Assembly (NCBI GenBank): GCA_001643675.2
Contig: LSRY02000030.1
Location: 1 to 64,000 of the forward strand
Reading direction: 5' to 3'
Source of the DNA: Monocercomonoides exilis PA203
Taxonomy: Eukaryota > Protista > Preaxostyla
Length of the DNA stretch: 64,000 nt
The translations under genes and the position numbers were made by a program. Each line of letters opens with the position of its first letter. Position 1 is the stretch's first letter. A model generated the notes under the pieces. It did no database searches, was not told where the DNA came from, and saw nothing but the letters and a program-made list of their open reading frames with translations. Positions 1 through 24,600 of the stretch are shown here, piece after piece.

Positions 1-1440
1 GAATGACAAGGAAAGAGCAAAAGATTCAGCGTGAGTAAGAGGCTGATGGATGAATGCATGAGCAAAGAAGTCAGTTACAGCGACCCTGGAGCAGAGTGAG
101 AGAGAACGAGAGCAAAGGAGAGATGATATGGGGAGAGGATGAGCCAGCTGTGCCAGACAGTGTATGTGGATGAGAGGAAGTGGAAAGAAGAGTGAAGAGA
201 GAAGGAGGGGATTATATTGATGAAGGTGTTGGTGGAAGAGAGAGAAGAGGAAGAGGTGGTTGAGGTGAATGGGTTGAGTGAGTGTGAAGGAAGGGATGGA
301 AGAGATGGATGGGATTGAGGAGATGAGATGCCTGAGAAAAGGGTGTTTGAGAAATGGAGGTTGAGGTGGATTTGGAGGTGGGGATGGGATTGATGATGGA
401 TATGAAGAGGAAGAGGAAGAGGAAAATGGGAAGGCAGGTGGAGAAGGAGAAGAAAAAGAAGATGATGAGGATGAGGATGAGAAAGATGAAGCAGAAAAAG
501 GAAAGGGATGGAGAAGGGGAAGGAAGGGGAAGATAGGGAAGAAGGAGAAAAAAAGGAAAGGCTGGATGAGGGAGATGAATGAGGAGAAAGAGGAGTGGGA
601 GATGGAGAAGGAGGCAGGGATCGGAGAGTGGGGATCTGAGAGGAGACTGTTTGGTGTGGAGAAGAGGAGGAAGGAGAAGATGGCTGGTTGAGGTGGCGAG
701 AGGGAGAAGTTTGAGAGTGCGGGGAGGCATGGGCAGAGAGGAAAAGTGGAGATTTTGTTGCTGGTTGGACTTGGCAAGTGGAGGAGCAGATGGAGGCAGC
801 GGAGTGGTGTTGGGCAGTGAGGAGTGGACAACCGCCGAGAGAGATGATGTTGAGATCGTTCACGCACAAGGAGGTGTTGATGATTAAGAGATTTGTTATC
901 ACACAGGCGAAATAATTGCATCTTGGATTTTCAACTTCTTCGCGAGCACATTTCAGTATTGACTTTTGATTGCTTATAACTGGAAAGAATTCGTAACGGT
1001 AAATCAATAAAAACAGTTATATTAGTGAATATTTCACACACTATGAGAATATTTTATTCCAAACTTAATAATGTGTGATAACAATTTAAACTTTAAAAAC
1101 TTGTTGATTTTTATAAAAACTCATTTGTACATTCTCCAACATGAATTGTGGCGATAAATTACATCTGTTATTTTTGCATTTATTTGGATTCATCGAATAA
1201 TCGAATGAAAAATATGAAAAAGCAATTATCAAAGAATTAGAAGTTAGTGAATAAAACAAAGAAAAAATGTTACAAACATTCAAATGAACAGTTGAATCAT
1301 AAGTTGTTTCAAGTCAACTTGTTCATATTAGAAAGAAAAATCACTAAGAACATTTTGCTTCGAACTCAAAATGGGATTTATTTTTGTTTGATCTTTTTTT
1401 AATAATTAGAAAGGGAATTATTCCCGGGTATTTGACACGC
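1..1440. mobile_element. Cargo-carrying TIR DNA transposon ('element A'), copy 1; right part only, left end outside the window
   Basis: 575-1443 is homologous to 7233-8103, and ~1185-1443 is essentially identical to 7845-8103. It ends in ...CCCGGGTATTTGACACGC followed by TA, the same terminus as copy 2. Upstream of ~575 the two copies are unrelated. Confidence 0.75.
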
Positions 1441-1442
1441 TA

Positions 1443-3775
1443 GAACTTAAACGAAATTACTTAATCAATACCCGTTAGCTCAGTCTGAGTCCAATTAGTA
1501 GTTCATAAAACCAAAAAGTTAGACTCAAAACCGTTTTGATTGAGTCAAGTCCAATATCATTAATCATGGGATCGTGATCATAAAAAATGGTATCCTTATT
1601 AAGGGTATTTTTGTTGACATAATTTTCAACAATTTTTTGAGATGTCTCAAGCTCCACTTTTGGATGTTTTGGAATGTGTTGAAAGAAGAAACGCAATCCC
1701 TGAACATTTTGAATCAACGAAAAGAAAAGAAAACTTATCACTTATCGAATGTGCATACAAAGATGTGAAGGACCCATCTCGTGCATTCTTTTGACTCACG
1801 GGCTTTGTGCGATCAGAATTTGACATGTTACTAAGGCTGCTTCCAGATGATTCACTTCCTCATCGGGGAAAAACAAAAGCAATTAACACACAGGAAGAGC
1901 AATTATTTTTGCTTTTGAATGTTCTCCATCACGGCTCTTGTACCCTCACAAACATCCTTGCCTCAAAAAAACTCGACTATCAAAGTGCGACTGTTAGACT
2001 GCTTCATTCCATTGTGTCTCGTCTTCGAGCGCCTTTGGCCGATCTTTTTCTGTCGTTCCGCAAAGACAGAATAGAGGGCATGAAGGATGTTGGAATAGTG
2101 CTTGATTGCACTATGATTCCGACTAATCGGACAGGGGGTCGATTGGAATATGGAAAAAAGTTTTTAGTGGAAAACACCACATTTACTGTGTCAAGGCAGA
2201 AGTGGGTGTTAACCCAAAGGTTGGCACAGCAAGCACCATTAGCGCTATTTACTCAGGCTCCACGCATGACTATGTTATATTCAAAGAGCATTATCCATTG
2301 TTTGAATCAAAACTGGAGGGCTCTAAAATTCTAGCTGATTCTGCATATATTGGTGCCAGACCAGACCTTGACGCTATCATAACAAAGCCCGTTGGCACAC
2401 AGGAGCTTGCTTCCCATCGTGTAATAGTTGAAAGGTTCTTTGGAAGGATGAAAACACTCTTCTCCATCTTTCGCAAACCATGGATATTCGAAATTGATCG
2501 AATAGCTGACTATTTTAATGTGGCTTGCTGCCTAACTAATTTTCATATTCTTCATAATCCACTCACTGCGAATGACTCACAAGCAAATTCAAGATTTTTG
2601 GATGGAATGATAAGCGATTATCTTCGAAAACAGGAAGCAAAGAGCCTTACAAATGAAAGATACCTAGCCAGATTAAGAAACAAACTTAATCCAAAAGATT
2701 CATTAACTCCCACAATTACGTCTTTAACTGCAGAATCAACAAGTTTTTTGAACACTTAAATACCCATATTGCATTTATTTTCTGATTTATTGACTTTTTT
2801 CCTTCTCGTTGCCCATATTAATATTTAATTTTATTTTAGATAGCTCAGATGAGACATACGCAATATTAAAAGCCAAAGAAAGAAGAGAAAATGAACAAGA
2901 GAAAGTTATGATCCAAAGAGAGCAGCAGAGATCAGACTTACTGAGTAGGGGAAGGGACGAGCACAACATTCAGCCTCAAAATGCTGATAATTCTTTGTCA
3001 TGGTTTATCCAAAATCAATGGAAACCTGTTAGCACACTTTTTCCACCTTCATCACAACAGTTTCCTTTAATTCCATCATCTTCCTCATCCGCTTCGTCAT
3101 CTTCAACACAAAATTCAACCAGAAAACCTAATCAAACACCCCTTCAGTTTTTACTGAATTGTCAACATTAGAACTGTTTTTTATTATTATTTTTCCTCTA
3201 TTGTTCAGACACCTCAAAAATTATATAACAATGAACAGTTTTGAAACTTTTCATTTTTTTCTTGTTAAAAATAAAAAAACAATAAATTTCGTCATAGAAA
3301 AAACTCTTGTTTTGTTGTTTTCATAAAAAGCATAACAAACATTATTGATATGAAAATTTTTTTGTGAAAAACACAAAAATCGCAATTAACAATAAATGGA
3401 AAGCTTCAGAGTTATATGGGGAAAACATATTCAATCCGTTTTTAAATTACAAAACTCTCACATCTTCAAAAACGAAAACATTAGAGATAAAAATGTCACA
3501 GAATCAGAGTGAAAGATGATAATCAAACACTTCATAAATGTGTCGTTAATAAATTATAATTACTGATTCCAGCGTTTCAAAACTTTGATCATTGTATTTC
3601 ATAAGAAATTATAAAGATACAAAAAATTATGATCAGATAAAAACATATTAAAAATTTTCTGAAGATCAAAAAAGATTGACAGAAAACCGTTTTGATAGAC
3701 TCAAAACGGAAATAAAGGAAAGAATACGAATTAACTAATGCAATACGTATTGATAAGATAAATTCAGAAAAGTTC
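1443..3775 (+). mobile_element. ISL2EU/PIF-Harbinger-type (IS5-like) DNA transposon ('element B'), ~2.33 kb
   Basis: Imperfect 29-bp TIRs: left GAACTTAAACGAAATTACTTAATCAATAC (1443-1471) versus the reverse complement of the right end, GAACTTTTCTGAATTTATCTTATCAATAC (21/29 identical). Subterminal motifs AAAACCGTTTTGA and AGACTCAAAA occur at both ends (1521-1539, 3683-3709). The TIRs enclose a DDE_Tnp_4-like transposase. Confidence 0.8.
1642..3171 (+). pseudogene. DDE_Tnp_4 (Harbinger/ISL2EU) transposase, disrupted, with a predicted 3' intron
   Basis: ATG at 1642 reads MSQAPLLD...AFF*LTGFVRSEF (in-frame TGA at 1792). Motifs: VLDCTMIP (first D), FSGKHHIYCVK after a -1 shift at ~2160, GSTHD, ILADSAYIG (second D), HRVIVERFFGRMKTLF (E), CCLTNFH. 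A GT..AG intron at 2743-2839 (phase 1) joins the 2840-3171 ORF in frame. Confidence 0.85.
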
Positions 3776-4259
3776 AGCTAGCTAGTGTGTAAAAAATCCG
3801 GGACGTGTCATAAACCCGGAACTCGATTATTTTTTATTTTATTTTTTTTTCTGAAGAGTATTTTTAATGTCTTATTAACCAATTGACATGGAAATGCTTT
3901 TATTATTAATAAAAAAATTTCAAACATCGCATTGTTTCAAAAAATTAGAAAATTTTTGAAAAATAAAATAAATAAATTTATTTCTATCTCATTCATTAAA
4001 AAATAAACGTTTCAAAATAATAATTTGAATTCCAACTTGATTGAAAATGAAACTTGAAAAATAACATGTATCAAAACAGAAAGAAAAAAAAACAATGATT
4101 TAAAACATAAAGCGTATAATTTTTGGAAACAATAAACAATTTCTCACCAATCCCTTATAAAAAAACAGTTGAAAATATTCAAATAACATAAATTGTGTAC
4201 AGAATTTTCACCTAAGGGCAAGAAAAGACTTAGGCTTTTCTTTAATTTTTGATCATTTA

Positions 4260-4901
4260 AAGCTGATTACAAAAAAGGGCTTGACATCAGATGCAAATGA
4301 AGACACTTCATCCAAATTATAAATTAATTCCGATTTGTTCTGATGCTCATCAAATAAATGTCTGTCTTTTTTTCAAACCAAGAAAAAGGCATTACTTGTT
4401 GAATGAGTAGCTCTCTCAACTGACAAATGGATAAGATGGACCAAGTGAAGGTACTCATTCGAATTGATAAAAGAATATTGCCAAGTGCAGTACACTTAAA
4501 AATTTGGAGTTGACTTGTGTTGAAATTCAGCTTCTACGTCTATTGCTTTTTAAATACAAACAAAAAGATACAAATCCAAAACTTTTAAAAAAAAGAAAGA
4601 AAAATCCAACTATGTCTCACATGTTATGCGCACGGAAAGTCACCAGGTTGTATTTAATCTTTAATGTTTGAGAAGAATGAAGATTTGTTTCGCCTGTTCA
4701 GAATTGGGCGTCGTTTTATTCTGCAGATGTCCCTTCCTTCCTTGCCTTTGCAGCACGATAGATACTGCTTTTCGTAACAAATCCGTTCTTAAATAAATCT
4801 GCATGCCTTGGCTTCTTCGATTCCATTGCATCCAACAATTCAAGCAACATCTCTTCCCTGTTGACTTCATTGATTCCAACAGCATTGTTATCAAGCGTCA
4901 T
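4260..4901 (-). pseudogene. Decayed pogo/Tigger-like (DDE_1) transposase fragment
   Basis: Minus-strand fragments include VTKSSIYRAAKARKEG (HTH-like N-terminus) and, further down, SWFEKK...FYNLDEVS (~4301-4324), matching the (I/F)YNxDE(T)S first-Asp motif. Multiple stops and frameshifts are present. Confidence 0.5.
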
Positions 4902-5256
4902 TGAATCATTCTCTACTTCGGCAGCCTTCTATCTTGCATCTTCTTGATGATTTTCATTTTCTAAATATTCATCTATTTTTTCCTCATCGCAAAAATAAAG
5001 CAAAGGGGGAATATTAACAATAACTTGATTAAGGCTCTTTTATTCGTTTCCATAATAGAAATATCATAACTTTTTTTGAAAGAAAATTTCAATCGATTAT
5101 TTCGATATTTCAACTTGAAGAAGTGTTCAGGTTTTCTGCATTTTTCTATAAAAAACTTTCACAGATAAATATGATAAATACATTTCATTAAAACAACTTT
5201 TCGTTGGAGCATGAAACTGGGTTTGTGACTGAAAGATTTGAGGGGTTAAGATGCTG

Positions 5257-7389
5257 CTAAGCCAGCTGGTTGACGGAAGAGCTGAGGGAAGGAAGCTGAG
5301 GAGGTGGAGGAGGAGATAAAGATGAGCGCGCTCTTGCAGGAACAGACAATCTCCCATCATCTGAAGGCACTTTGTCTCCCAACAATGTATCTCCATCCTC
5401 ATTTTCATCTCTGTTGAAAGCTGCCTTTGAGATTAGTTGAGAAGCAGAAGAGCACGCCTTCGGTTCTGATCCATGTGCCACATTCATCCCACCAACAGCT
5501 ACACCTTCCAAAATCTCACTCAGCGCCTGCACGAAGCTCACCACAGCTGCTGCTGACATCCCCACCGATGCGACTTTTCCGTCTGATGAAGCAGCACTTG
5601 CCATTCTGAGCACACATCTCCTTGCCATGCTGAACACGTGGCCTCGTCTGTGCATGGCTGTGATGCGCGTTTCCATCGACTGCCCACACCGCTCCAGTGA
5701 TGCCTTCTCAGTCACATGCTACCTGGGCGTGGCGTACGAGGTGAACTGCTCAATAACAAACGGGCGCCCAAAGTCGACAAGAGGAGGATGAAGAGTGAGG
5801 AGATAAGTGAGATGAGATGCGTTAAATGCGGAATGCTTGACAAATGAGAAAGAAAGACAATGGGAAAGCTGTGTGGTTGTTGGGAGAAGGAGGAGGGAGA
5901 TACCAGAAGTGTAGTTTTCTTTACTCGAAGAAGATGGAGTCATTGTGGATGTGCTCGGATGCATCACAAAAATGGCTTCTCTCACTGAGGGCACATACAA
6001 CGTGGAGGAAGAGTTTTGAAGAGGGTGTGTATTGTCAGATGAAGAGTTTGTTAACTTCGCTGTGGAAGTTGAACGAGAAGGAGCCGCGCCTGTCGAAGAA
6101 GAGGAGGAAGATGAGGTGGTGGAGGAAGATGATGAAGGAGAAGTTTACATCACAGGAGCCAGCAATACAGAAGACGATGAAGCCGACTGTGGATAACCCA
6201 AAGCACTGCTTTTCCCCACCAGCCTCTTTTGTGCCAAAGAAGTCATTTCCTTGTGGAATGCGAGTGGAGACATGATTGGATTGACTGCATTGACAAGCAG
6301 ACTGAACACGTTCTGGCGCAGCTGGTGATGAAACCTTCGTTCATCGTCGTCGACGTCAGAGACAATGGGGCTGCGCTGTCTGCCTCGCTGATCTTCCGGA
6401 TGCGGTGACCACTGAGCATCTAGCCAGTACTGCTGAGCAGCTGAGAGGGCAGCTGGCTGCTGTTTGTGGTGTTCATGCAGTGCTGCTTGGCTGTTTTGTC
6501 TGCTCTGCTCTCCTTCTGCTGCGATGCAAAGGAAAGAATTGGAGTGATCAGCAGCTCGATGTCCTTGGTGAGTGGAGAGAGGAGAGGGAAGAGGGCAGAC
6601 TGGCAGATAATGGGGGAGAAGAGGAGGACAGACTGAGGCAGGGCAGTTGTGGCTGAGGCAGCTGCATATGCACCTGTGTTTTGAGAGCTGTTGGATATAC
6701 CACACAAGTTTTGAATCTGATGTGAAGAAAAGGTTAGAGCACAAATTGGTATATAAGCATGTGACAATGATGCCTTGAATGATGATGAAGAAGAATAACT
6801 TGTTCTAATCTGCACTGCAATGTCCATTATCTGCTAAAAGCGCAGAGAGTGTTGTGATCTTTTCATATTGATAATCGAACTGTTTTGTGCGTGCCTTGAA
6901 CCCAGGACTTCGTGCTTCGTCGATCTCGCTTAGTGTCTCGAGAACAGCCACTGTGCCGTCAATGCCTTCAATTCTGTCTGAAGGTGTTGGCGGGATTGGC
7001 TGCAGCCAACTTTCCGAATTAGAATCGGTGGATCTTCTGAGAGGAGAGGCAGCAGCACGTACAGAAAGAGACTTATGTGCAGAGAGGGGGCTGAGGAAGG
7101 CAGAGGGAGAGTCGGGTGAGTTTGATTGTTCAGAAGGTGCGAAGGAAGAGGGGCTTTCATCATAGCCGGTAGGTGGGGTGAGTGAAGAAGAGGAACAGAT
7201 GGAAGAAGAAGAGGAAGAGGTGGAAGAAGAGAATGAATGAGGAGAAAGAGGAGTGGGAGATGGAGAAGGAGGCAGGGACTGGGGAATGGGCATGTGGGAG
7301 GAGATTGTTTGGGGTGGAGAAGAGGGGGAAGGAGAAGATGGCTGGTTGAGGGGTGGAGAGGGAGAAGTTTGTGAGTGCGAGGGAGGCAT
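5257..7389 (-). pseudogene. Captured host-gene-like cargo inside element A (Pro/Ser-rich N-terminus fused to fragmented ORFs)
   Basis: A GC-richer block inside AT-rich element ends, broken into minus-strand ORFs (6805-7389, 6420-6827, 5257-5715) that read as protein-like but are separated by stops and frameshifts. Confidence 0.55.
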
Positions 7390-8110
7390 GGGTAGAGAGG
7401 AAAAGTGGAGATTTTGTTGCTGGTTGGACTTGGCAAGTGGAGGAGCAGATGGAGGCAGCGGAGTGGTGTTGGGCAGTGAGGAGTGGACAGTTACTGAGAG
7501 GGATGATGTTGAGATGTGTCATGTTAAATTACATGTTAATTGATTAAGATACTTGTTATCACATAGGCGAAATAATTGAATATTGGATTTTCAACTTCCC
7601 CGTTAGCACATTTCAGTACAGACTTTATATTGCTTATAACTTGAAAGAATTCGTAATAGAAAATCAACGAAAACATTCATATAAGCGAATATTTTTATTC
7701 AATAAGAAAAACAAAATACAAACTCAATTTTTATGTCAAAACAAAATAAACATAACAAACTTGTTGAATTTTATAAAAACTCATTTGTACATTCTTCCAC
7801 ATGAATTGTGGTGAATAATTACATCTGTTGTTTTTGCGTTAGTTTGGATTCATCGAATAATCGAATGAAAAATATGAAAAAGCAATTATCAAAGAATTAG
7901 AAGTTAGTGAATAAAACAAAGAAAAAATGTTACAAACATTCAAATGAACAGTTGAATCATAAGTTGTTTCAAGTCAACTTGTTCATATTAGAAAGAAAAA
8001 TCACTAAGAACATTTTGCTTCGAACTCAAAATGGGATTTATTTTTGTTTGATTTTTTTTTAATAATTAGAAAGGGAATTATTCCCGGGTATTTGACACGC
8101 TAGCCGTTGA

Positions 8111-8184
8111 GCCCGCTTAGCTCAGTACGGTAGAGCGTTAGACTCTTAATCTAACGGTCGAGGGTTCGACCCCCTCAGCGGGCG
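8111..8184 (+). tRNA. tRNA-Lys(CTT)
   Basis: Acceptor stem GCCCGCT/AGCGGGC plus discriminator G, D arm GCTC..GAGC, anticodon arm TTAGA-CTCTTAA-TCTAA, T arm GAGGG-TTCGACC-CCCTC; intronless. Confidence 0.97.
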
Positions 8185-8188
8185 AATC

Positions 8189-8203
8189 TTTTAGTTTTTT
8201 TTT
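8189..8203 (+). terminator. RNA polymerase III terminator (T4 and T9 runs)
   Basis: TTTTAGTTTTTTTTT starts 5 nt after the tRNA 3' end. Confidence 0.8.
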
Positions 8204-9809
8204 GAGCAAAAATAGTCATTATTAGGAGCACTGCTTCAATTTCATCGATTAATAATTGATGTTAATGCGGCATGACTTTTCTATCTGTTATTTAATTTAT
8301 TTGTTTTTGATTTTCATTAGTGTTTGTTAAGCACAACCATTAAATGAAGTTTTGATTTTTTTTACCTTTTTTTTTCACAATATTAATAACAACAGTTATT
8401 ATCTATAATAATAAACTTTGCATTCAAAATAATAATTTTGCAAATAAAACGAGAATTTTTGAGTTGTAAAATAAATAATTTTTGAATGCAAATTAATCAT
8501 CAATTCTTAAAAAATAAAATTTTGTTCACAATTACGAAAATGTTTTAAAACCATATTGACTCATGTATTTGCACAAATTGTGTATTGGAATAATCTTCTT
8601 GTGTGTGTGAATAATATTTTTGAAAACTTTCAATTTTTCGCTAAAGAATTATTTTTTCAAAAATTTTTTATTCTAATAAATATATGAGAGATTTTCATAT
8701 CTATTGCAAAAATTCTAATTTTGTCTTTATTTTTGTTTATTTGAACAAATTTCGTAATTTCGTTTGTTTAATTAATAATTCGTTTGCAAAAATTCTCATT
8801 TTGAAATAATGCTGGTGAAACAAATTATATATGAAGAACAAACAACGTAACATTATTTTTATAATGAAATGTTCGTCCTAGTATTTTATTCAATTCTTTT
8901 TTCTTTCTTCAAGAAAAGTTTTCGCAAATTCACACTTTTCTAATCATTTTAATATAATTATAAAATAAAATATTTATTTATAATATTTACTTTATCAAAA
9001 ATATAGATTATTAAATTTTTAAATTTTCATCTTTAAATAAATTTAAAAAAACAAAACAAAAAATTCTAAAATTATAAATATTTGTTTGTTTATAAAGAAT
9101 AAATTATATTTTCATAATTACGAATCAAATAATATTTTTTTATTTAAATACAAAAATATTTTTTTTAATTAATTTGTTATTGTAAAAATGAATAATATAA
9201 AATCAGTTTACTTATATTTTAATTAAAGCTTTTTTTGTTTGAAAGATTTTATTTTAAAATAGAATATATGAAAGATTACAAATTTTTGTTATTTTTTGTT
9301 AATAGTAGTAGATATAATTTGATATTTAATGCAAACAGAATTAATAATTATTCATTTATAAAAAACGAATGAAAATAATAATTATTGAGATTACTAAAAT
9401 CTAGATATATATGAAAATTTTTCTATTTGATATTTATAAATTATTTTTTATATTGAAAAGAATAATTCTATTTTAATATTTTTCATATTAGTATTATGAA
9501 GTGAATATATATTATAATGTTTTTCATTAACTTATAGATAAGATATTTTAAATTCTAATTAAACTTTATTTAAGTATTTTTTTCTATATTTGTTGTTTTT
9601 TGATTATAAAATTTATATTTTTTTAAAATTTTTATGGAATAATAAGTTAATTTTTGTATAATAATAATTTTTGTTTGAAAGTAATTAAAAATGTAAAATT
9701 ATAGAATTGAAGTTTGTGATGAAATTTTTAATATGGAAATAGATATTTTTATTTTTATAAAGTTCATTTTATCCTATTTTGTTTTAAATTAACAAATGTT
9801 TCGAAATTT

Positions 9810-11000: not shown

Positions 11001-11074
11001 GTGTGCAAAATACAGATATCGCAAAAAATACTGGAAGTTGCAAAAAATACTGGACATCGCAAAAAATACCGGAC
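11001..11074 (+). repeat. Short tandem array of ~19-20-bp units (GCAAAAAATACTGGA core)
   Basis: tgcaaaatacaga / tcgcaaaaaatactgga / ttgcaaaaaatactgga / tcgcaaaaaataccgga. Confidence 0.7.
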
Positions 11075-11416
11075 AAGATCGATTTCACTATAACTGCAAG
11101 AAGAAAAATTCTGATAATTTTCCTCAAAACACACATCATCAATACAAACTCATTTGATATACAAAACTTTCTAAACAGCTTCATTTGTGCTCAAAAAAAA
11201 TAATATTTGAAAATTTGGAGAAATAGGATTTTGAGTTTCTCCGAGATTTCAATCATTAATTTTTTTCTTAGTACAAATGAAGCTATTTTGAAAGTCTCAT
11301 TTATCAAATGAGTTTGTACTGATGAGATGTGTTTTGAGGAAAATTGTCAGAATTAATTCTCTTGCTGTTGTTGAGAAATCGATCTTGCCCGGTATTTTGA
11401 GTGATGTCAGGTGTTT
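11045..11416. mobile_element. Hairpin/MITE-like element: ~160-bp diverged inverted arms around a ~50-bp spacer
   Basis: 11045-11204 is the reverse complement of 11256-11416 (for example AAAATACCGGACAAGATCGATTTC versus GAAATCGATCTTGCCCGGTATTTT, and TTTTCCTCAAAACAC versus GTGTTTTGAGGAAAA). Confidence 0.75.
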
Positions 11417-13009: not shown

Positions 13010-14039
13010 CTATGAAATGTCAGTCTCTGGAACAGACGGAAGAGGAGTTAAATCTCCAGAAAACAAAGTGTGTCTTTTCTTTCTGTGAAGGGACTGATTC
13101 AAAATAAGCGATGAATCAGAATCTCCCAATATCAGATTCGAAAAGGAGGAAGCAGATGAAGCAGATGAAGAGCGAGATTGAGATTGAGGTTGAGGTTGAG
13201 GTTGAGGTTGAGGTTGAGGTTGATGCTTAGCTTGAGGTGTTGGAGAAGCAGACATCACTTTTTGAGGTGAAGTACAAGAAGACATTGGCTGTGGATAAAG
13301 AGAAGGATTGGGCTGATAATGCTGAAATGGAAGGGGAGAGAACTGAAGAGGAGACGAAAACATCTGAAAAGAGGGTGAAGTGAACAATGGGGCAAAGGGT
13401 ACATAAGGCGGGGGCTGTAGATGAGGAGGATGAAAAGAAGGAGAAGGAGAGGGTGAGAAAGTGGAAGAGGAAGAGGAAGAAGATGATGATGATGAAAGCT
13501 GCTGTTTTTGTTGCAGAAAAGGGAAATAGAAGTTCTGTTGGATGTATTTTGCAGCTTCTGAGTTGAGTTTGTAGATGAGGCTTTTTGAAGGGGCATACAT
13601 AGAGAATTGTGATGGAGGTGTTAAATGGGTATATGAAGTGGGAGATGAGTGAAATGGAACAGGAGGAGACGATATTACAGGAGATGTTGAGGAAGAGGGA
13701 GAGGAAGAGGAAGAAGAAGAGGAGGAGGAGGAAGAGGAAGAAGAGGAAGGAGGAGGAGGAAAAGGAGGAAATCCAGCAGAACGAGGCACACCTGAAGTGA
13801 ATGCAATGGATGGCATAAAAGAAGGAGAAGACAAAGGAGAGAAAGCAAAAGAATTAGGATAGTTTTTCTGTTCTGGATGAAATTGCATTCCTGAATGGTG
13901 AATGCTAATTGAAGGGTTGATGAGCTCAGAGTGATTGAGTGATCGAATAGGAGACTTGCTGTGTGAGTGTGTGTGATGATAGCTGTGATGGCGATGCTGA
14001 TGATGAACAGAGCGACTTCTGTGTCTTGTTTTATTGGCA

Positions 14040-14071
<32 letters not shown>

Positions 14072-15761
14072 ATGAAAAGAAGAATGAAGAGAAGAAGAAG
14101 AGGAAGAAGAGGAAAATGAAGAAGTTTTGTTGCCTTCATATCTTTCGTGTTTGTCTTGTGACATTTCTTTGATTTCATTTGAATGTTGTCTGTGTTTGTG
14201 ACTGGAATGACTATATTCATTGCTTTCTCTATGAGATGAATGGTTTTTGCGTTGAGAGGGAGAAATGGATTTTGTCGAATGTCTATCTGAAATGTGATGG
14301 TTGTGGTTGATGGACTTATATGAAGCATCTTCGGCTTTCATGAATTTGCTATCTTTTGTTGTTGAATAATTCTTGTATTCTTCTTCTTCCTCTTCTTCCT
14401 CTTCCTCTTCCTCTTCTTCTTCTTCTTCTTCTTCTTCTTCATATTCTTCTTCATCATATTCTTCCTCCTCTTCTTCCTCCTCCTCGTCGTATTTATCTAT
14501 CAAATTCTCTTTCCCTTTTCCAATAATGTTATATTCCATCACTTCTGTTATTATTTCCTTTGCTAAATCTTCATCACCATCTTCAATTTGATTATATTCC
14601 TTTTCTTTCTCTCTCTTCCCTTTTTGATCTTTATCAAAATAACCTTCTTCTTTTCCTTCTCCTTCTCCTTCTCCTTCTCTTTCTTCTATCAATTCAGAAG
14701 ATTCATTATTCTCCTTATTGTCTTCTTCTCCATTGCTCACTTCATCTTCTTTGTTGATGTTACTTCTCTTTGTTTGTCTGTCATTCATTCTGTTTTGTTT
14801 GTTTTGTTTGTTCAATTCATCCAATGAATAAGATGAATTGGAAGAAGAAGAAGAAGAAGAAGCTAATAATTTCTGATTAGAAGAGGAGAGAAATGAAGAA
14901 GAAGATTTAGAAATAGAAGAAGAAGAGAAAGAAGAAGGAGAAGGAGAAGGAGAAGGAGACAGAAGAGGAGGCGAAGAAGGAAGAGGATTTGTGGGCTTTG
15001 CATTCTCAAAACACGAAGAAACAAAAGAATTTGATTTGTTTGGCAGAAAAAGAGAAGGGGAAGAAGAAGGAGAAGAAGAATTGGATGAGAAAGAGGAAGA
15101 TATAACAGAAGAAGAGGAGGAAGAGGAAGAGGAAGAGGAAGAGGAAGAGGAAGAGGAAGAGGAAGAGGAAGAGGAAGAGGAAGAAGAAGATAAAGAAGAA
15201 GGAGATGGAAGCAATGAAGATGTTGTTGATGTTGTATCATTTGTTGAATGAGAATCAAAAGAAGAAGATGATGATGATGAGGAAGAGGAAGAGGAAGAGG
15301 AAGAAAAAGAAGAAGAAGAAGAAGAAGGAATAAGAGTCTGAAGAGAAGGCAATTGATGATCGAGAGAAGAAGGAGAATGAGAAGTGACTGGAAGAGAAGG
15401 AGCAGAAGAGACAGAAAGAAGAAGCTGTTTCTCTTTTGAGGGAGAAGAGGAAGAGTCGAATGAGCTTGTCATCCAACAGACAGAAGGCTCAGAGAGATGA
15501 GGAGTGAGGTTGAGAGGAGAAGGAGAAGGAGAGGAAGAGGAAGGAGAAGAGGAGGAGAAGGAAGGAGAAGGAGAAGGAGAAAATGGATTAGATGGAGAAG
15601 AAGAAGAAGAAGAAGAAGAAGAAGAAGAAGAAGAAGAAGAAGAAGAAGAAGAAGATGATGATGATGATGATGATGATGACACAGAAGAAGAAGAAGAAGA
15701 AGAAGAAGAAGAAGAAGAAGAAGAAGAAGAAGAAGAAGAAGAAGAAGAAGAAGAAGAAGAA

Positions 15762-15812
<51 letters not shown>

Positions 15813-17079
15813 GGAGCAGATGAAGAATAAGAAGAAGAAGAGAAAGAAATAGCTTGAATAGCCTTGTGAGCCAAGTCAAAAGGAATAGAAGCACCTGAGT
15901 GAGGGGTGAGGGGGAAAGGAGAAGGTGTAGAAAGAGCAGAAGAGCAGAAGGAAGAGGAATAAGAAGGAGAATTTTCAGGCGAAGAAGAAGAGAAGAGGTA
16001 AGTGGAAGGAGAGCTGTTTGTGAGAGAAGAAGAGGAAGAAGAAGCATTCGAAGGAGAAGAGGAAGGGTTGGATGATGCAGAAAGAGGAGGAAGAGGAGGA
16101 GAAGGAGATGGGATGTGAGAAGGAAGATGAGAAAGATGAGAAAGATGAGAAAGATTAGAGAAATGAGAAGGAAGATGAGAAGGAGAAGGAAGAGGATAAA
16201 GAGAAGGAGATGTTTGGCAGCCAACACTTGATGTCTCTGCATTTCTTGTTTGATCAAATGGACTTTCATTCAAATTGTATTCATCTTCTTCCTCTTCTTC
16301 CTCACCTTCTCCTTCTCCTTCTCCTTCTTCATACTCTTCCCACTCATCTCCTTCATATTCATTATCTTCAATATCAGCATTTCCTTCTTCTTCGCTTCTT
16401 TTTTCTCTTCTTTCGCTTGTCGTTGATATAAAATCAATTGCTTCTTCTTCTTTCTCTTTTTCTTTTTCTTTTTCTTTTTCTTTTTCTTTCTCTGTTTGCA
16501 TCACAATCTGAAGAAGTTCTTTCTTTTCTGTATTTTCATTCATAATTTCATTGATAGAAGTATTCTGATTGACTGGATGAGAAAGATCTGTTAATGTTTG
16601 TTTCTTTTGCTGTGGAGAATGAGATGGTGAAGAAGAAGAAGTGAAAGATGAAGAATGTGGAAGAGGAGAAGATAAAACGGAAACAGAAGAAGAAGAAGAT
16701 ATTTGCTGTGGTGATTGAGTGGATATAACAGAATTTGATGATGAAGATGACGAAATATTCTGTTCACTTTTTTGTGTTAGAGATGATTTTTCTGTTTGTG
16801 AAGAAGAAGAAACAATGTTTGATTCAACAACATCTTCTGAAATATTCTCATTTTCTTTTATTTCTTTCTTTTTCTTCTTCTCTTTTTGTGCATTCTTATT
16901 TTGATTGTCTTTTTGTTTGTAGCTTTTTCTAATCAAAATTCTGTTTATCTCTTCTTCTCCTTCTTTATCATCATCATCATTTTTATTATCTTCTTCTCTT
17001 CCTCCTTTTTCATCTTTCTTCTTCTTTTCTTTCTCTTTCTCCTTCCTTCCTTCTTCTTTCTTCTTCTTTTCTTTCTCTT

Positions 17080-17111
<32 letters not shown>

Positions 17112-18824
17112 TCTTCTCCTTCATCCCATCTATTCGTATTCATCATTGGTGTTACTAATTCTGTTTCTGTTCTGTTTATCTCTTCAATCTCTATGTCTTG
17201 TATATTCCTTCTCTTATTCTCTATTGTTAGATCTCTTTCTCTCTTCTTTTCTTCTTTCTCTTTCTCTTTCTCTTTTCCTTCTCTTTCTTCTTCTATTTCT
17301 ATTTCTTTGTCTTTTTTTATCTTGTTAATCTTTTTCTCATCAATTTTGTTGTATTTCTTCACATTTCTTTTGATTTCTTTCTCTTTCTGCTCAATTTCTG
17401 TTGCTTTTTCATTCATTTTTATTGGCTCAATCATTTCTTTCTTTTTCTCCTTCTCTTTCATTTCATTTTTCTCTTTCTTTTCTTCCTTCTCTTTCTTCTC
17501 TATCTTTTCGCTGTGGATGATTTCAATCAACAATTCTATTGCTTCTTCATTCTCTTCGTTCGTTTCATTTGTTTCATTTTCCTTCAAATTCTTTTTCTTT
17601 TTCTCTTTCTCTTTCTCTTTCTCTTTCTCTTTCTCTTCCTCTTCCTCTTCTTCTTTTGTTGTTTTTTCAGAATATTTCATTTTTTCATTCTTTTTCTTCA
17701 TTTCTTGTATATTCTGTTTTCTTTCCTCTTTCTCCAAACAATCTTTTTGCTCATCCAAAACATTCATTTTTGAATGATTTTTCTTATTTTTGTTGTTTTC
17801 TCTATCAAAAACTTCTTCTTTCTCTTTTCTTTCCTTCTTTTCTTTCACTTCTTCATTTCCTTCTTTCATTTCATCAATTTTAATGGAATTATTTTGAGTT
17901 TCTTTGTTTATCCTCCTTTCTTTCTTCTTCTTCTTCTCTAATTCATTTGAATTCTCTTGTTTATTCATCTCTTTCTTCTCTTTCTTCTCATTCATCTTGT
18001 TTGTTTCGTTAATATTGCTTATCTTGTTTATCTTATTTATTTTCTCATCTGTTTTCTTGCTTTTCAATCGTTTCTCAATCAATTCCTTCTCTTTAACATT
18101 ATCATCATCTTTTTCTTCTTCTCCTTCTTTTTTCTTTTCTTTCTCTCCTTTTTTTATTTCTTCTTCTTCTCCTCCTCCTCCTCCTTCTTTCTCTCCTCCT
18201 TCTTCTTCAGAAGAGACATTAACATCAGACACTAAATGAACAGAGGGACAATTAGCAGTCAAAATGAATGAAGATATTTCTGATGAAGAAGATGATGGTG
18301 ATGGAGAAGAAAAAGAAGAAGTTGAAGAAGAAGAAGATGGAGAAGAAGAAGAAGAAGGGGGAGGGGGAGGGGGAGGAGATGGAGAAGAAGATGAAGAAGA
18401 TGTTATATTTTCGTCAGAAGAAGAGAAATGAGATTGAATTGGTGTTGTTGATAAGGCAGGAGACGAAGGAGGAGAAGAGAAAGAAGGAAAATGATGGAAA
18501 GAAGAAGGAGGAGAAGGAGAAGAAGAAACAGAAGGATGAGAAGAAGGAGAAGAACAAGAAGAAGAGGATGATGATGATGATGATGAATTTGTTGTTTTGA
18601 TGCTTCTTCTTATTTTACTTTTATTTCTGTTTCTGTTTGTGTTGTCATTTGAGTGTTTTGAGGGAGAAGAAGGAGACAAACTCAGAAAAGATGAAGAAAT
18701 ATCATCTGAACTGTGGATATTTGAGATGTTATGAGAAGGAAATGAATTTGTGTTGGAAGAAGAAGAAGATGATGATGATGATGATGATGATGATGAAGGT
18801 GAGGAAGAAGAAGAAAAGGAGGAA

Positions 18825-18859
<35 letters not shown>

Positions 18860-19562
18860 AGAAGAAGAAGAAGAAGAAGAAGAACTCCTCAAACAAGAAT
18901 AGCAAAATGAATGAGAAGAAGAGATGAGACGAGGAGTTTTATCAACAAAAGAAGAGAGAGGTTGATTCAGAACATCAAATACATCATCATCTGAAGAGGA
19001 GGAGGAAGAAGAAGAAGAAGAAGAATGAGAAGAAGAATCAATTGAATAGCAGCAATTGGATGAAGTGAATGGAGATAATGGAGACAAAGAAGATAGAGGG
19101 GTTAGAGCAGTCAATGTAGCATCAATATCAACAGAAGAAGAAGATGATGACGAAGATGAAGATGTGACAGAAGAAGAAGGAGCAATTGAAGAAGAAGATG
19201 AAATAGAAGAAACAGAAGAAGAAGTTCTTTTGATATTCTTTGTTTTAGAATCAATTATTGATTGAGCTTTTTTATTGTTATTGTTATTGCTAATAATGAT
19301 GTTTGTCTTTTCAGATGAATCTAATGATTTTGAATCATCTAAGCCAGTTTTATTCAATTGCTTTGCTTGTTTCATCTGTTTCATTTGTTTTCCTTTCTGT
19401 TGAGAAGAAGATTTCATTCTCTGTGTGAATGAAGAGGATGAAGGCAGAGGACGTCTTTGTGTGTCTGATTGGATGGAAGATGAATGAGAGAGAGAATTCG
19501 AACTGGATAAACGGCGAATGAATGGAGAAGAGGGGAGTTCTGATGAAGATGAGGAAGAGGAG

Positions 19563-19600
<38 letters not shown>

Positions 19601-21111
19601 AGAAGAAGGAGAAGGAGAAGGAGAAGAAGGAGAAGGAGAAGGAGAAGGAGAAGGAGAAGAAGAAGTGAAATGGTTGATATTGTCTGAATTTGAAGAGTAA
19701 ACAGAAGGCAGAATTTGAGAAGATGGCAAAAAAAGAGTATTTTTTGAGTGTTTTGGTAAAGAGATAGGAGAAGACATAGAAGAAGATGTGGAACTTGAAG
19801 AATTGGAAGAATTTGAAGAGACAGATGAGAAAGAATAACGAGAAGGATAAGAAGATGAATTCGAAGTATTTGAAGAATAAGAGGAATGAGAGGAATGAGA
19901 AGGAGGAGAAGGAGAAGAGGAAGAAGAAGCACAACAAGATGAATTGGTTGAAGGTGTTTGAGGAGGCATATCTTGTGAGTAATCAGCTGCTGAATACATC
20001 GAAAAGGAAGAATTCGAAGAAGAAAAGGGAGAAGAAGAAGAGTAAGGTGAAGAAGGAACAGAAGAAGGAGGTGAAAGAGATTTCGAAATAGATGCTTTTC
20101 CAGCTGGTTCTAATGAAGAAAGCTTTCGTTTGCGTCTGGACTCATAATAATCAATCAATGGAATTGTGGGTGCCGGCAAACGGGAAGCATATGGAGAACG
20201 AGGTTTAGGTGATTTTGTGCTTGTCATCGAAGCTGTCTCATTCTTTGTTGTTTTCAATGAGCGTATTTTTGGTGCTGAAGTAGATGATGGTGATGTTGTG
20301 GATGAAATTGGTATTTGCTGAGAAATCTTGTTTGAGGCTGGTGACACTGTTAAACCAGACTGGCTCATTTTGGTACTCGTCTCAACGCTTTGAAGCGATG
20401 GTGGTCGATGCCTGGTGAATAACGGTTGCTTCTTTTGAGGTGAAGTTTCACTTTTGAGATTAATTGAATTTCTTTGAGAAATTATTGTGGTATCGGATTG
20501 TTTGTCGTTTGAAACATTAAAATCACTATTTATCTGAATAACCTGAGCATTCCTCGTATCAAAAAATTTATCAGCTGATTTTTTCTTTTTCTTTTTCTTC
20601 TTTTTAACAGGTAAATTACTTTTTTCTTTCTGAAAAGTTGTCATAGATAAAACAAAAGTTGATTCTTCATCTTCATTTTTTGAAATTGATGGCAGCAATG
20701 TACTTGTACCGGTGTTGCTGATGGTTGTGTTTGTCTTGAAAACCTGTTCATTCCGCGAAAAAGTTTCTTCCTCAGATGAATTTTTATACAGATCTCTTGG
20801 AGGCGGAACGTATTGTTTGTTATACGTAAATGAATGTGTTGATGCTGGGGGAATATGAAGCAGTTGTTTGGCGTCAGTGCCCGTTTTGGAAAACGGTGGC
20901 AGCAAAGAATCATTATCAGAAAGCTGTTCCTTTGTTTCTGGTAATGTCGTGCCTGAAAGTTTGTGTGCATATAAATACTTTCTTGTTTGATTAGAGCCCG
21001 CTTTTATAGTTGTTGTTCCTTTTTTCTTTAGTAATGCAGCTGAGAAAAACAGTTAAATTTTGAAATATCAACAAATGTAAAACAAAATAAAACAATACCT
21101 GGCTCGAGCAT
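13010..21111 (-). CDS. ~2680-aa low-complexity Ser/Pro-rich and Glu/Lys-rich protein of unknown function, 2 exons
   Basis: Uninterrupted 7.9-kb ORF. The likely start is ATG at 21111 (exon 21111-21099), and the GTATTG...TCTCAG intron at 21098-21040 restores the frame into the long exon. No recognisable domain. Confidence 0.8.
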
Positions 21112-21669: not shown

Positions 21670-24600
21670 TTACTCTTCGAAATGAGGAGGAATTTGGTCC
21701 TTGGGGATTAAGCGACTGAGATAGAACATTGGGTCAATAGGCATCTGATATGGGAAGAATTGCTGGTTGATAGAGTTGAAATACTGTTCAGGATGAAATA
21801 CCTCCAAAAGATGGTTTGAATTCGCACTGGGAGGATTGCTTGAGAGAGGAGAGGAGAGGAAAGAGTGCTGAGAGGAATACACTTCTGCTGATGGAGTCTC
21901 AATGCTGTTGATTGAAGAAGACAAAGAAGTCGAATTTGTAGTCTTGTCGTTTTTGTGATGTGGCGGAGGAGGGTTGTCTGTTGGATAGAACGATGTTGGC
22001 AGACGAGAGGGAAGGCTGCTCATGTCGCTGTCAATGTTCCTGTTTGTGTCGCCTGTTAAGTTCGAGTTGCTTGAATGATACTGTTCATAATTAGGCTTCT
22101 TCAATGATCCCTGTAAGAGAGGCTCTTGTTCCAATCCTCTTATCCACTCTGGAGCAGGAACTGTGTCAAGCTGGTTGTTTAATGACTTTGATAACTTCGA
22201 TGGAGAGGAAGAAGAAGAAGAAGAAGAAGTTAAATCCGAGTCAGATGTGTTGATGGAAGGAAACCTGCCAAACCCATTCTCTGATGTTGTTGTGCTTTTC
22301 ATGCCATGGTAAATTGTTGCCATTGAGAATGCGACTTCTTCTGTTGGGTTGTTGATCACTTTCTCTCTTCGATTCCTCTTCTTTTCTGAGCCTCCACTCG
22401 TGAAAAACGTGAAAAACTTGTTTTTGAGTAATTTCAAAGAAGAAGACATCTTGTCAGCATCATCACCATTCATTCCATTGTTCAGCTTTATCCCCTTTCG
22501 CATTTTGCGTCTCTTTAGCAGCAGAAGAACAACAACCACAGCAACAATTGTTGCAATCACAAGCACAACAGACACAACAATTTCAGCAGTTGCTCTTTTG
22601 CGTGGCTTCTCTTCAGGAATGTTGTGTTGCAGAGGAGCTATCTCCACAAAGTTCGTGTGTGGAATGCTGCTGAATGGAAAAGGCATGTCCTCTGTGTCCC
22701 AGTACATCATCACACACCCCATTTGGTTTGTTTCAGCAGAAGGCTGCAAAATAGCTGAGGGCAAATGGAGAAATGCGTGTGTGTCATCCAGAAGCTCAGA
22801 AAATTGATATGCGAAATTATCGCGAATTGTGAAATTGCCTCCATTTGAGTCCTTTTCAGCCAGACACAATGCAATATTGCAATCCATCAGTTGTGTGCCT
22901 GTGATTTCAAGTGTGGATATTTGTCCTTCTTCTGAAGATATCTTCACAGAAGAGACTGTAGGAATGAAAAGCAGAGATGGCAAGTCTTTCACTGCTTCTC
23001 CAGAAACAGTACATCCTTCTCCTTTTGTCAAAAAAAGAGACGGAAAAGAAGGCGTCCCGTCAGATCCTTCTCTCAAAGATTCAATCACAATTTCTGAAGT
23101 TGAAGCTTCAAAATATATATCGTTGTTGCTTTGTTTTTTCTCCTTCCATCGTGATCCACATCGAATATTTCGATGAGCAGACAGAAATTGTGGAATGTTC
23201 TTTGTATTTCCAGAAAACAAGCACTCAGAAATCTTCAATGATCCTCCTTTCACAAACACAGGGCATATTGACAGTTGAGTGAAAGTTGTGTTTGAAAGAG
23301 TCGTTTTGCACTGAGAAAAGTGCAAAACAGAACCATTCCAATTGCATATTGGCTCGTTGTCTGAGCCTTTTGAATGGCTAAAAGTTGAATTACCAAAATG
23401 AGAAGCTAATAAAGTGTGTTCAGAAAAGGATGCACCACAATTTGAATGTTGCATTATCAAATTTTCGGAATCTGAGCTTGAAATTTTGCAGTCTTCAAAT
23501 AAAACCTCGCATTTTGCAAGTTCAACTCCACATCCTTCCAACTGAGAACTAACACAGTTAATAAATTTGCATTGTGAAAAAGAAAACTTATACAATTCAT
23601 CATCATCACCTTCTTCTTCTTCAAAGTCATTACGTTTCATTTTATTCTCTTCAGTTTCTTCTTTGTTATTAGTGCTTTTCTCTGAGTCATATTGCAAATG
23701 ATCGAAATTGTTGTGGAATCTGTCTTTCAGACCAACAACAGCAGCATTCAAACTAGACGACTTGATAGAAACAAATTGACACTTTGAGAATTTCTTGCAG
23801 ATGTTCTGCTCATTCATTGTTCTCTTCCCATTCAAATCTAATGAATGAAATCTGCTTTTTCCATCATTTCTCATTCTTCTCAAACCAAAACCAGCAGATG
23901 AACGATCATTCAGGTCAAAGAGAGCACCTCTATCAACAGAAACAGATTGGAAGTTGCAATCATCCACAACAGAATCAACATCCAAGCCAAAAACAAAAGG
24001 AGAGATGGCCAAATGTTGCCCGATGAATGAGCTATGCAACAGCGAAAATGAACCCAAGACAGCTTGAACAAGGCTGATTGGAGCAGAAGACTGAACGCTC
24101 TGAGACTCGCTGGAGACAGTTGGCAGTGAGAAAGTGCAGAATGAAAATGAAAAAGACTTCCCACATGAGTAAAATATGGCTGAATATTGAGAAGATGCTA
24201 TCTGAGAAAAGCCAAGTGCATCGATGTGTATGTGCACAACAGACAAGTCTCCTGTGTTCATCACAAAAGAACGATGAGTCGTCTGCATTGACTTTGCAGG
24301 CGAAGATGAAGGACGCATAATTAATGTCGCTATGGAATCATCTTTCAGATCTGATGATCCTTTTTCATAGCTTCCATTAAGAGAGTGGTCAGTTGTGTAG
24401 GAAAAGTCAATAACTCTTAATTCATTGTCTGTTTGTGTCCATGCTTCGTCTTTGATTTCAACGTCAGACAAATCGACTTCTCTTTCCAATGCAGCCACTT
24501 TAACAATCAGACATTTTGCATTTTTTGTGGGGAGAAGATGGCCCATCCCATCAATTATGTATTTGCATGCTGATTCCTTCGATGCACCGCAGTCTTTTGC

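Follow-up and report, generated by a model that had tools for sequence, protein, structure and literature searches.

Pogo-like and Harbinger-type DNA transposons stacked at TA sites upstream of tRNA genes in Monocercomonoides exilis

We have studied a stack of DNA transposons that lies directly in front of an intact transfer RNA (tRNA) gene in the oxymonad Monocercomonoides exilis PA203. The window, i.e., the whole stretch of DNA analyzed, is the first 64 kb of contig C26 of the M. exilis assembly, which comprises 82,301,135 bp in 101 contigs. Elements of two kinds occur here and at other tRNA genes of the genome, namely pogo-like elements (families A and C) and Harbinger/ISL2EU-type elements (B, B2 and B3). 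The conclusion that we hold with good confidence is that both kinds integrate at TA dinucleotides some 3-17 nucleotides (nt) upstream of the mature 5′ end of genes transcribed by RNA polymerase III (Pol III), and that they stack there.

The window holds the part of such a stack that adjoins the tRNA gene. The initial annotation described this as a first copy of element A, a TA, element B, nine nucleotides, a second copy of A, a TA with a further eight nucleotides, and the gene for tRNA-Lys. Direct reading gives the same order with the same boundaries, as set out below; where no other source is named the line rests on that reading.

1-1440, plus strand: 3′ (tRNA-facing) part of element A copy 1, pogo-like, with the terminus CCCGGGTATTTGACACGC at 1423-1440.
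1441-1442, no strand: TA joining A copy 1 to B, taken as a re-used target dinucleotide; junctions of TA alone are found in several other stacks.
1443-3775, plus strand: element B, Harbinger/ISL2EU-type, with inverted ends GAACTT...AAGTTC (DDE_Tnp_4 match and genome copies).
3776-3784, no strand: nine-nucleotide spacer AGCTAGCTA from B to A copy 2; homology to B stops at 3775 in all copies.
3785-8100, plus strand: element A copy 2, 4316 bp, non-autonomous and pogo-derived, GTGTGT...CACGC (end of homology among copies, TA on both sides).
4552-5003, minus strand: frameshifted remnant of the helix-turn-helix (HTH)-like first exon of a pogo-like transposase, within A copy 2 (tblastn with the intact exon from contig C12 as query).
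5257-7522, minus strand: Ser/Pro-rich open frames of A (no Pfam match; the homologues are copies in the M. exilis genome).
8101-8110, no strand: TA followed by 8 nt of native upstream sequence (GCCGTTGA), together TAGCCGTTGA.
8111-8184, plus strand: tRNA-Lys(CTT), intact (ARAGORN; Rfam RF00005, 70.5 bits).
8189-8203, plus strand: TTTT followed by T9, consistent with a Pol III terminator.

The termini given for the elements are the points at which homology stops exactly, on comparison of about a dozen copies of A (about the number present in the genome) and seven copies of B. A copy 1 finishes with the letters ...TTTGACACGC, its last base being 1440; its truncation on the left is the end of contig C26 and has no biological cause. 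Positions 523-1440 of this copy are 88% identical to positions 7187-8100 of copy 2, and the sections 546-1373 and 7204-8033 align in four blocks with identities of 85-94%. The TA that ends the spacer at 3776-3784 is the left target duplication of A copy 2, and the TA at the start of 8101-8110 is the right one. The remainder of the spacer is absent from B in its other copies, and may be an excision footprint. A TA-xx-TA pattern is seen both in this spacer and in a second one between elements elsewhere (L017:2456-2464, TAATCGCTA); it is speculation that such patterns are the footprints of excised TA-targeting elements. Upstream of other tRNA-Lys(CTT) genes the sequence is of the type CCGTTT..CAACAA. 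The tRNA-Lys(CTT) gene is the sole tRNA called by ARAGORN in the window, and it ranks among the top-scoring tRNA genes of the genome (Rfam).

Positions 1-8938 of the window are duplicated on contig C21 (1278643-1289839). The duplicate extends over about 9 kb at 98.4% identity and has two extra internal segments. It spans the whole stack, the tRNA gene and 750 bp past the gene, where the homology ends. This may be a segmental duplication or, given its place at a contig end, a haplotig of the assembly. Since the two stacks are nearly identical, both loci were scored as a single event. The simplest order of arrival would be A copy 1, then B, then A copy 2, and the whole block would have been duplicated after stacking to give the copies on C21 and C26.

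The frequency of such an arrangement was measured from the side of the tRNA genes. The 63 best-scoring tRNA genes (Rfam) were taken, and the sequence upstream of each was read individually. At 15 of the 63 there is a terminus of A, of a B-type element or of C located 5-14 nt upstream. When duplicated loci are collapsed these 15 genes correspond to 11 independent events, involving at least eight tRNA species. Termini of A adjoin tRNA-Lys and tRNA-Arg, and those of B2 adjoin tRNA-Gln, tRNA-Arg and tRNA-Thr(TGT). B3 and another B-type element are found at tRNA-Glu, and forms of C at tRNA-Thr(CGT), tRNA-Thr(TGT), tRNA-Gln(CTG) and tRNA-Glu. With about 260 termini of these families in 82.3 Mb, chance would place approximately 0.001 termini in the interval 4-17 nt upstream of 63 tRNA genes, compared with the 15 observed.

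We also examined the association from the side of the elements, using whole-genome patterns in which a terminus is accompanied by a T-loop 53-82 nt away. Twelve of the 76 C termini adjoin tRNA genes; these genes belong to ten or more tRNA species, and 4-9 nt separate the terminus from the gene. The same is true for 10 of 63 B2 termini, and for four termini of B or B3. Controls with the pattern of terminus and T-loop reversed gave zero matches in the genome, and the mirror pattern, also applied to the whole genome, in which a T-loop has a terminus on its downstream side at a distance of up to about 30 nt, had no match for either C or B2. There are nine independent 3′ ends of A. Three sit 8-10 nt from the genes for tRNA-Lys, tRNA-Arg and tRNA-Val, and one (on contig C91) directly adjoins a gene with box A and box B and a T7 terminator. 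In a further case, on C17, a single B-type element that was inserted later lies between A and the tRNA gene, and the other ends adjoin further B-type or C elements.

Overall the targets comprise at least 15 tRNA species and one non-tRNA gene, and the TA sites fall in a strip of about 15 nt on the upstream side. Three of the A sites suggested GCTAGC as a fixed target. This was ruled out, since other sites lack GCTAGC.

Several observations bear on how these arrangements arose. On contig C56 a gene for tRNA-Gln(CTG) is preceded by a C element, the terminus being followed by TA, then AGCGAA, then the gene. A paralogous tRNA-Gln(CTG) gene 9 kb away provides the empty site, where native AT-rich DNA gives way to an identical TAAGCGAA. 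On contig C12 three families share one gene, in the order TA-B2-TA-ATCGC-TA-A-TA-GCGA-TA-C-TA-GA-tRNA-Val, so that the TA sites at -17, -10 and -4 are taken up by B2, A and C, respectively. The junction between stacked elements is often exactly TA, as in A-TA-B in the window, and C-TA-B or C-TA-B2 on C23, C22, C24, C12 and C5. This is expected if the duplicated target dinucleotide is used again. No nesting of elements inside each other was seen, and the stacks that were followed by coordinates end at a tRNA gene, on C25 (B2-B-B2-tRNA), C5, C7, C8, C17 and C12. Orientation is uniform. In the pogo-like elements the transposase is transcribed away from the tRNA gene (five of five for A and two of two for C3), and the autonomous B-type elements are oriented towards it (three of three). 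The empty paralogous site, the junctions of TA alone and the uniform orientation are all evidence that elements integrate repeatedly, and in a targeted way, at the start region of Pol III genes.

The initial annotation had proposed that the Pol III start region serves as a safe harbor for both kinds of element, with each new arrival adding to a growing array, and had looked to enrichment upstream of Pol III genes as the decisive point. The enrichment is present, with 4 of 9 A, 12 of 76 C and 10 of 63 B2 termini adjoining such genes and none lying downstream. The TA-only junctions and the meeting of three families at the tRNA-Val gene on C12 fit the growing array.

Given that the positions of the termini, their enrichment, their restriction to one side and the bias in orientation are shown, a mechanism may be considered. 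The integration site would lie at or beside the expected start of Pol III transcription. Each integration would duplicate the TA, so that a TA is always left beside the gene, and the next arrival would use that TA again, pushing the older elements outward. The outcome would be a 'conveyor-belt' stack, with elements 2-13 nt apart, of which the window holds the end closest to the tRNA gene. The gene survives undamaged, since it has an internal promoter and loses the 5′ leader. Coding sequence makes up about 63% of the M. exilis genome, and the intergenic regions are short (PMC8767320, PMC6759080); since the tRNA gene is left intact the site would be a harmless one in such a genome.

What might the transposases recognize? 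We infer that what guides them may be the Pol III pre-initiation complex (TFIIIB/TFIIIC), or else the distortion that it imposes on DNA, as for Ty3. Spacers are variable and the genes do not begin with the same bases, and thus the assembled Pol III complex, or its bent or opened DNA, is more likely to be recognized than a DNA motif. The analogy is with Ty3 and TRE5-A (PMC5911963). The more far-reaching proposal, that two unrelated DDE lineages in an oxymonad independently read the assembled Pol III pre-initiation complex and integrate in a fixed orientation at the start, is one on which we would place even chances of being right or wrong.

The variation in the spacers also bears upon the foremost alternative, in which homing is directed by sequence. 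In that case the transposases would read conserved DNA of the tRNA gene, such as that around box A, and make their cut at the closest TA on the upstream side, in a manner like that of Dada but offset. Box A and box B are indeed present in all of the targets, including the non-tRNA gene on C91 and C13, and insertions are strictly on the 5′ side. However, the spacers have lengths between 4 and 17 nt and the genes diverge widely in their first 7 nt, and the same recognition of DNA would be needed in two unrelated families of transposase. We regard this explanation as unlikely.

A second alternative invokes retention rather than targeting. Insertion would occur at random TA sites, and elements would survive only in the harmless strip before tRNA genes because the genome is so gene-dense. 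This draws on the coding fraction of about 63% and the short intergenic regions (PMC8767320, PMC6759080), and on the internal promoters of tRNA genes, by virtue of which such insertions would be tolerated. Yet the AT-rich intergenic DNA is itself rich in neutral TA sites, and the termini are nevertheless found in a strip of 14 nt; the same dinucleotide has been struck by several insertions; none lies just downstream of tRNA genes, although insertion there is expected to be equally harmless; and the orientation is uniform. Retention bias is thus very improbable as the source of the pattern.

Finally, it might be supposed that the elements are drawn to the ends of other transposons, or to heterochromatic clusters of transposons, with tRNA genes merely lying inside these clusters, and nearly all copies of A are indeed within 2-13 nt of B-type or C termini, with copies clustered in islands; but we give this hardly any credence, because many single elements adjoin a tRNA gene with native DNA on their other side (e.g., on C56, C16 and C47), elements are never nested in each other, and the stacks that could be followed (on C12, C17, C25, C5, C7 and C8) end at a tRNA gene.

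Some points weigh against targeted integration upstream of Pol III genes as we have presented it. The 63 tRNA genes read individually are drawn from an estimated 150-300. Many copies in stacks were followed partway, and the share of copies that lead back to a Pol III gene is therefore a minimum. In the window, B is flanked by TA on its left side only. One copy of A, on contig C80, interrupts the box A/box B gene, in one of the copies of that gene, and has the opposite orientation; this is the single intragenic case. Guidance by Pol III proteins is argued by analogy with Ty3 and TRE5-A, and the position of the Pol III start in M. exilis is that which is expected.

We now turn to the nature of the elements. 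The inverted ends of A copy 2 are imperfect, with 15 of 19 positions matching (3785-3803 and 8082-8100), and the end motif occurs a second time at 3804-3823. TA is found on both sides of A copy 2, of the A copy on C12 and of copies of C. Copies 1 and 2 of A are homologous along most of their length, the differences being internal deletions and a repeat expansion. The counterpart of A copy 1 on C21 is a full element of about 7.0 kb that includes a transposase (a DDE_1-homologous region), and longer A copies of about 5.8 kb occur on C61, C17 and C7; like the C21 element these have an HTH-like first exon. The autonomous copies contain an open frame of 331 residues with a DDE_1 domain (PF03184; E = 2.9e-12 and 1.9e-11), annotated as MONOS_14243 and relatives. 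For two A transposases the ratio of nonsynonymous to synonymous substitution (dN/dS) is 0.35, with values of 0.56 and 1.14 in the wrong frames. There had been some doubt over the pogo-like label, given the lack of Pfam matches and relatives; this was overturned by the DDE_1 gene in the longer copies.

A copy 2 itself does not have the DDE region of the autonomous copies. It retains just the frameshifted remnant of the first exon, and is therefore non-autonomous. With the exon from C12 as query, tblastn aligns 91 residues at 70% identity before the frame changes. The coding strand of A copy 2 is the minus strand, and transcription thus runs away from the tRNA gene. The first exon of A gave no Pfam match, either to a CENP-B/psq-type or to a Tc5-type N-terminal HTH DNA-binding domain.

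The Ser/Pro-rich frames of A are of less certain character. They contain no Pfam domain, and a protein search with them matched only copies in the same genome (MONOS_* proteins). An Atlas search gave no credible relative, the Atlas model being poor. Their dN/dS values lie between 0.47 and 0.79 and stops are present in other copies, so it is uncertain whether they encode a protein. The start of these frames, at 7187-7521 in the window, is a GA-rich module of 340 bp that is found at 20 or more other sites in the genome. Those copies have 82-89% identity and are located outside full copies of A.

Family C was first met between A and the tRNA-Val gene on C12. It exists as a 700-bp foldback form, and as copies of 1.65 kb that encode a protein of 340 residues with a DDE_1 region and a candidate Tc5-type HTH region. 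The DDE_1 match of the C transposase has E = 6.7e-14; that to HTH_Tnp_Tc5 has E = 4.7e-4 and 20.5 bits, just short of the cut-off of 22.2 bits. The transposases of A and C are 33% identical across 310 residues, and the two families share TA flanks and two subterminal copies of the motif AAAYCCGRG.

Element B gives a match to Pfam DDE_Tnp_4 (PF13359) at positions 2202-2759 of the window with E = 3.6e-15, in a transposase gene (about 1642-2759) that is broken by a stop and a frameshift. It has seven close copies in the genome, at 79-100% identity, and many more at 65-72%, which include longer copies. B2 is a non-autonomous Harbinger-type miniature inverted-repeat transposable element of about 967 bp, and B3 comprises elements of about 1 kb; both have ends of the B type. 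These ends are flanked by TA, and the 3-bp TWA duplication of classical Harbinger elements was not found. ISL2EU elements make a 2-bp target duplication, and TA rather than TWA flanks therefore fit an ISL2EU-like reading of the B-type elements. No Myb/SANT-like second gene was recognized in B, where the only other sizeable frame (2809-3171) has no Pfam match. The class assignments in the initial annotation were thus well chosen: A was called pogo-like, and its autonomous relatives carry a DDE_1 transposase along with the TA duplication and inverted ends, and B was called ISL2EU/Harbinger type, with which the DDE_Tnp_4 domain and the TA flanks agree.

Two further observations concern the loci where these elements are found. 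Units of one B2 element and a tRNA gene occur as inverted duplications with identical spacers, at C23:301591/321436, C37:337618/338344 and C91:1075286/1077366. On C23 a transposon stack of 20 kb is bracketed by two divergent tRNA-Gln genes.

The non-tRNA target is a candidate small RNA gene with at least three copies, at L014:2250-2350 (minus strand; C91), L015:2600-2640 (C80) and C13:1423032-1423130. It has motifs like box A and box B, a terminal stem of 9 bp and a T7 terminator. Transposons lie directly upstream of it on C91 and C13. ARAGORN called no tRNA in the copy next to A on C91, with or without introns. Against Rfam the candidate remained below every threshold, the best match being vault RNA (15.6 bits, E = 0.78), and tRNA-Sec gave no match. 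A telomere-like motif, TTTTTTAGGGTTAGGGTT, is found at L015:2570-2590 and at L020:95-115 (minus strand), about 40-60 nt upstream of the candidate small RNA gene and of an intron-type tRNA gene on C1. Some Pol III genes may use this motif as a promoter element on their upstream side.

Elsewhere in the window there are very long open frames of 1400-2600 residues on the minus strand (13010-20905, 21670-26898, 33785-38026 and 38630-43540). This strand is pyrimidine-rich, and the frames contain no Pfam domain. They may be real low-complexity proteins or by-products of the strong strand skew. At 11045-11416 there is an inverted repeat with arms of 156 nt that are 82% complementary, and a loop of 60 nt. 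Three tandem units of 19 nt (11015-11073) adjoin this repeat, which may represent a foldback element of small size.

The habit of homing in on the DNA before tRNA genes is the standard illustration of transposons that have evolved to spare a compact host, and its basis so far has been in retroelements (Ty1, Ty3, TRE5-A and DGLT-A). We know of no cut-and-paste DNA transposon that homes upstream of tRNA genes. Our search of the literature on DNA transposons with tRNA or Pol III genes, and on transposons of M. exilis, found no description of cut-and-paste elements with such behavior. A review of Pol III targeting deals with retrotransposons only, mentioning DNA transposons once in its general introduction. 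The earlier paper on the M. exilis genome makes no mention of transposons, and that on the PA203 assembly puts DNA transposons at 3.7 Mb and is silent on tRNA genes (PMC8767320).

If targeted integration upstream of Pol III genes is correct, DDE transposases of two superfamilies can reach the same solution as the retroelements, and the convergence extends to the Metamonada. Were the assembled Pol III complex indeed what both lineages read, these would be the first natural cut-and-paste transposases with a built-in, protein-guided safe-harbor target, and the stacks would record the order of arrival. Natural transposases with a narrow and harmless choice of target are of interest for gene-delivery tools. 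The stacks also explain part of the repeat-island structure of the M. exilis genome, and of the breaks in its assembly.

Among known systems, Ty3 of Saccharomyces cerevisiae is alike in integrating within a few nucleotides of the Pol III start, upstream of tRNA genes, in a safe harbor that leaves the gene intact. It is, however, a retroelement with an integrase of retroviral type that makes target duplications of 5 bp, and for which dependence on TFIIIB has been shown. The M. exilis elements are cut-and-paste DDE transposons with TA duplications, for which guidance by a Pol III factor is a proposal.

TRE5-A and DGLT-A of Dictyostelium provide a second parallel, again in a protist with a dense genome, with oriented insertion upstream of tRNA genes and convergence of unrelated classes of element. 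Both are retrotransposons, TRE5-A inserting about 48 bp upstream of tRNA genes and DGLT-A 13-33 bp upstream, whereas the DNA transposons of M. exilis lie at 3-17 nt and form head-to-tail stacks.

Dada elements are DNA transposons with target duplications of 6-7 bp. They resemble the elements described here in using multicopy small RNA genes (tRNA and small nuclear RNA) as harmless targets, but they form a superfamily of their own and insert inside the genes at a specific sequence (PMC3706591, PMC8869645). The M. exilis elements insert upstream with variable spacers, have TA flanks and carry DDE_1 and DDE_Tnp_4 transposases, and so do not belong to Dada.

Families A and C share with the pogo/Tigger/Fot1 group the DDE_1 catalytic domain, the TA duplication and short inverted ends, and C in addition gives a match just below the cut-off to the Tc5-type HTH. 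Family A differs from the group by about 3 kb of extra Ser/Pro-rich frames. We found no report in the literature of a choice of target directed by Pol III for pogo/Tigger/Fot1 elements. B has the DDE_Tnp_4 transposase and inverted ends of the PIF/Harbinger-ISL2EU elements, but is flanked by TA (2 nt) in place of TWA (3 nt), and for PIF/Harbinger elements a target upstream of tRNA genes is new.

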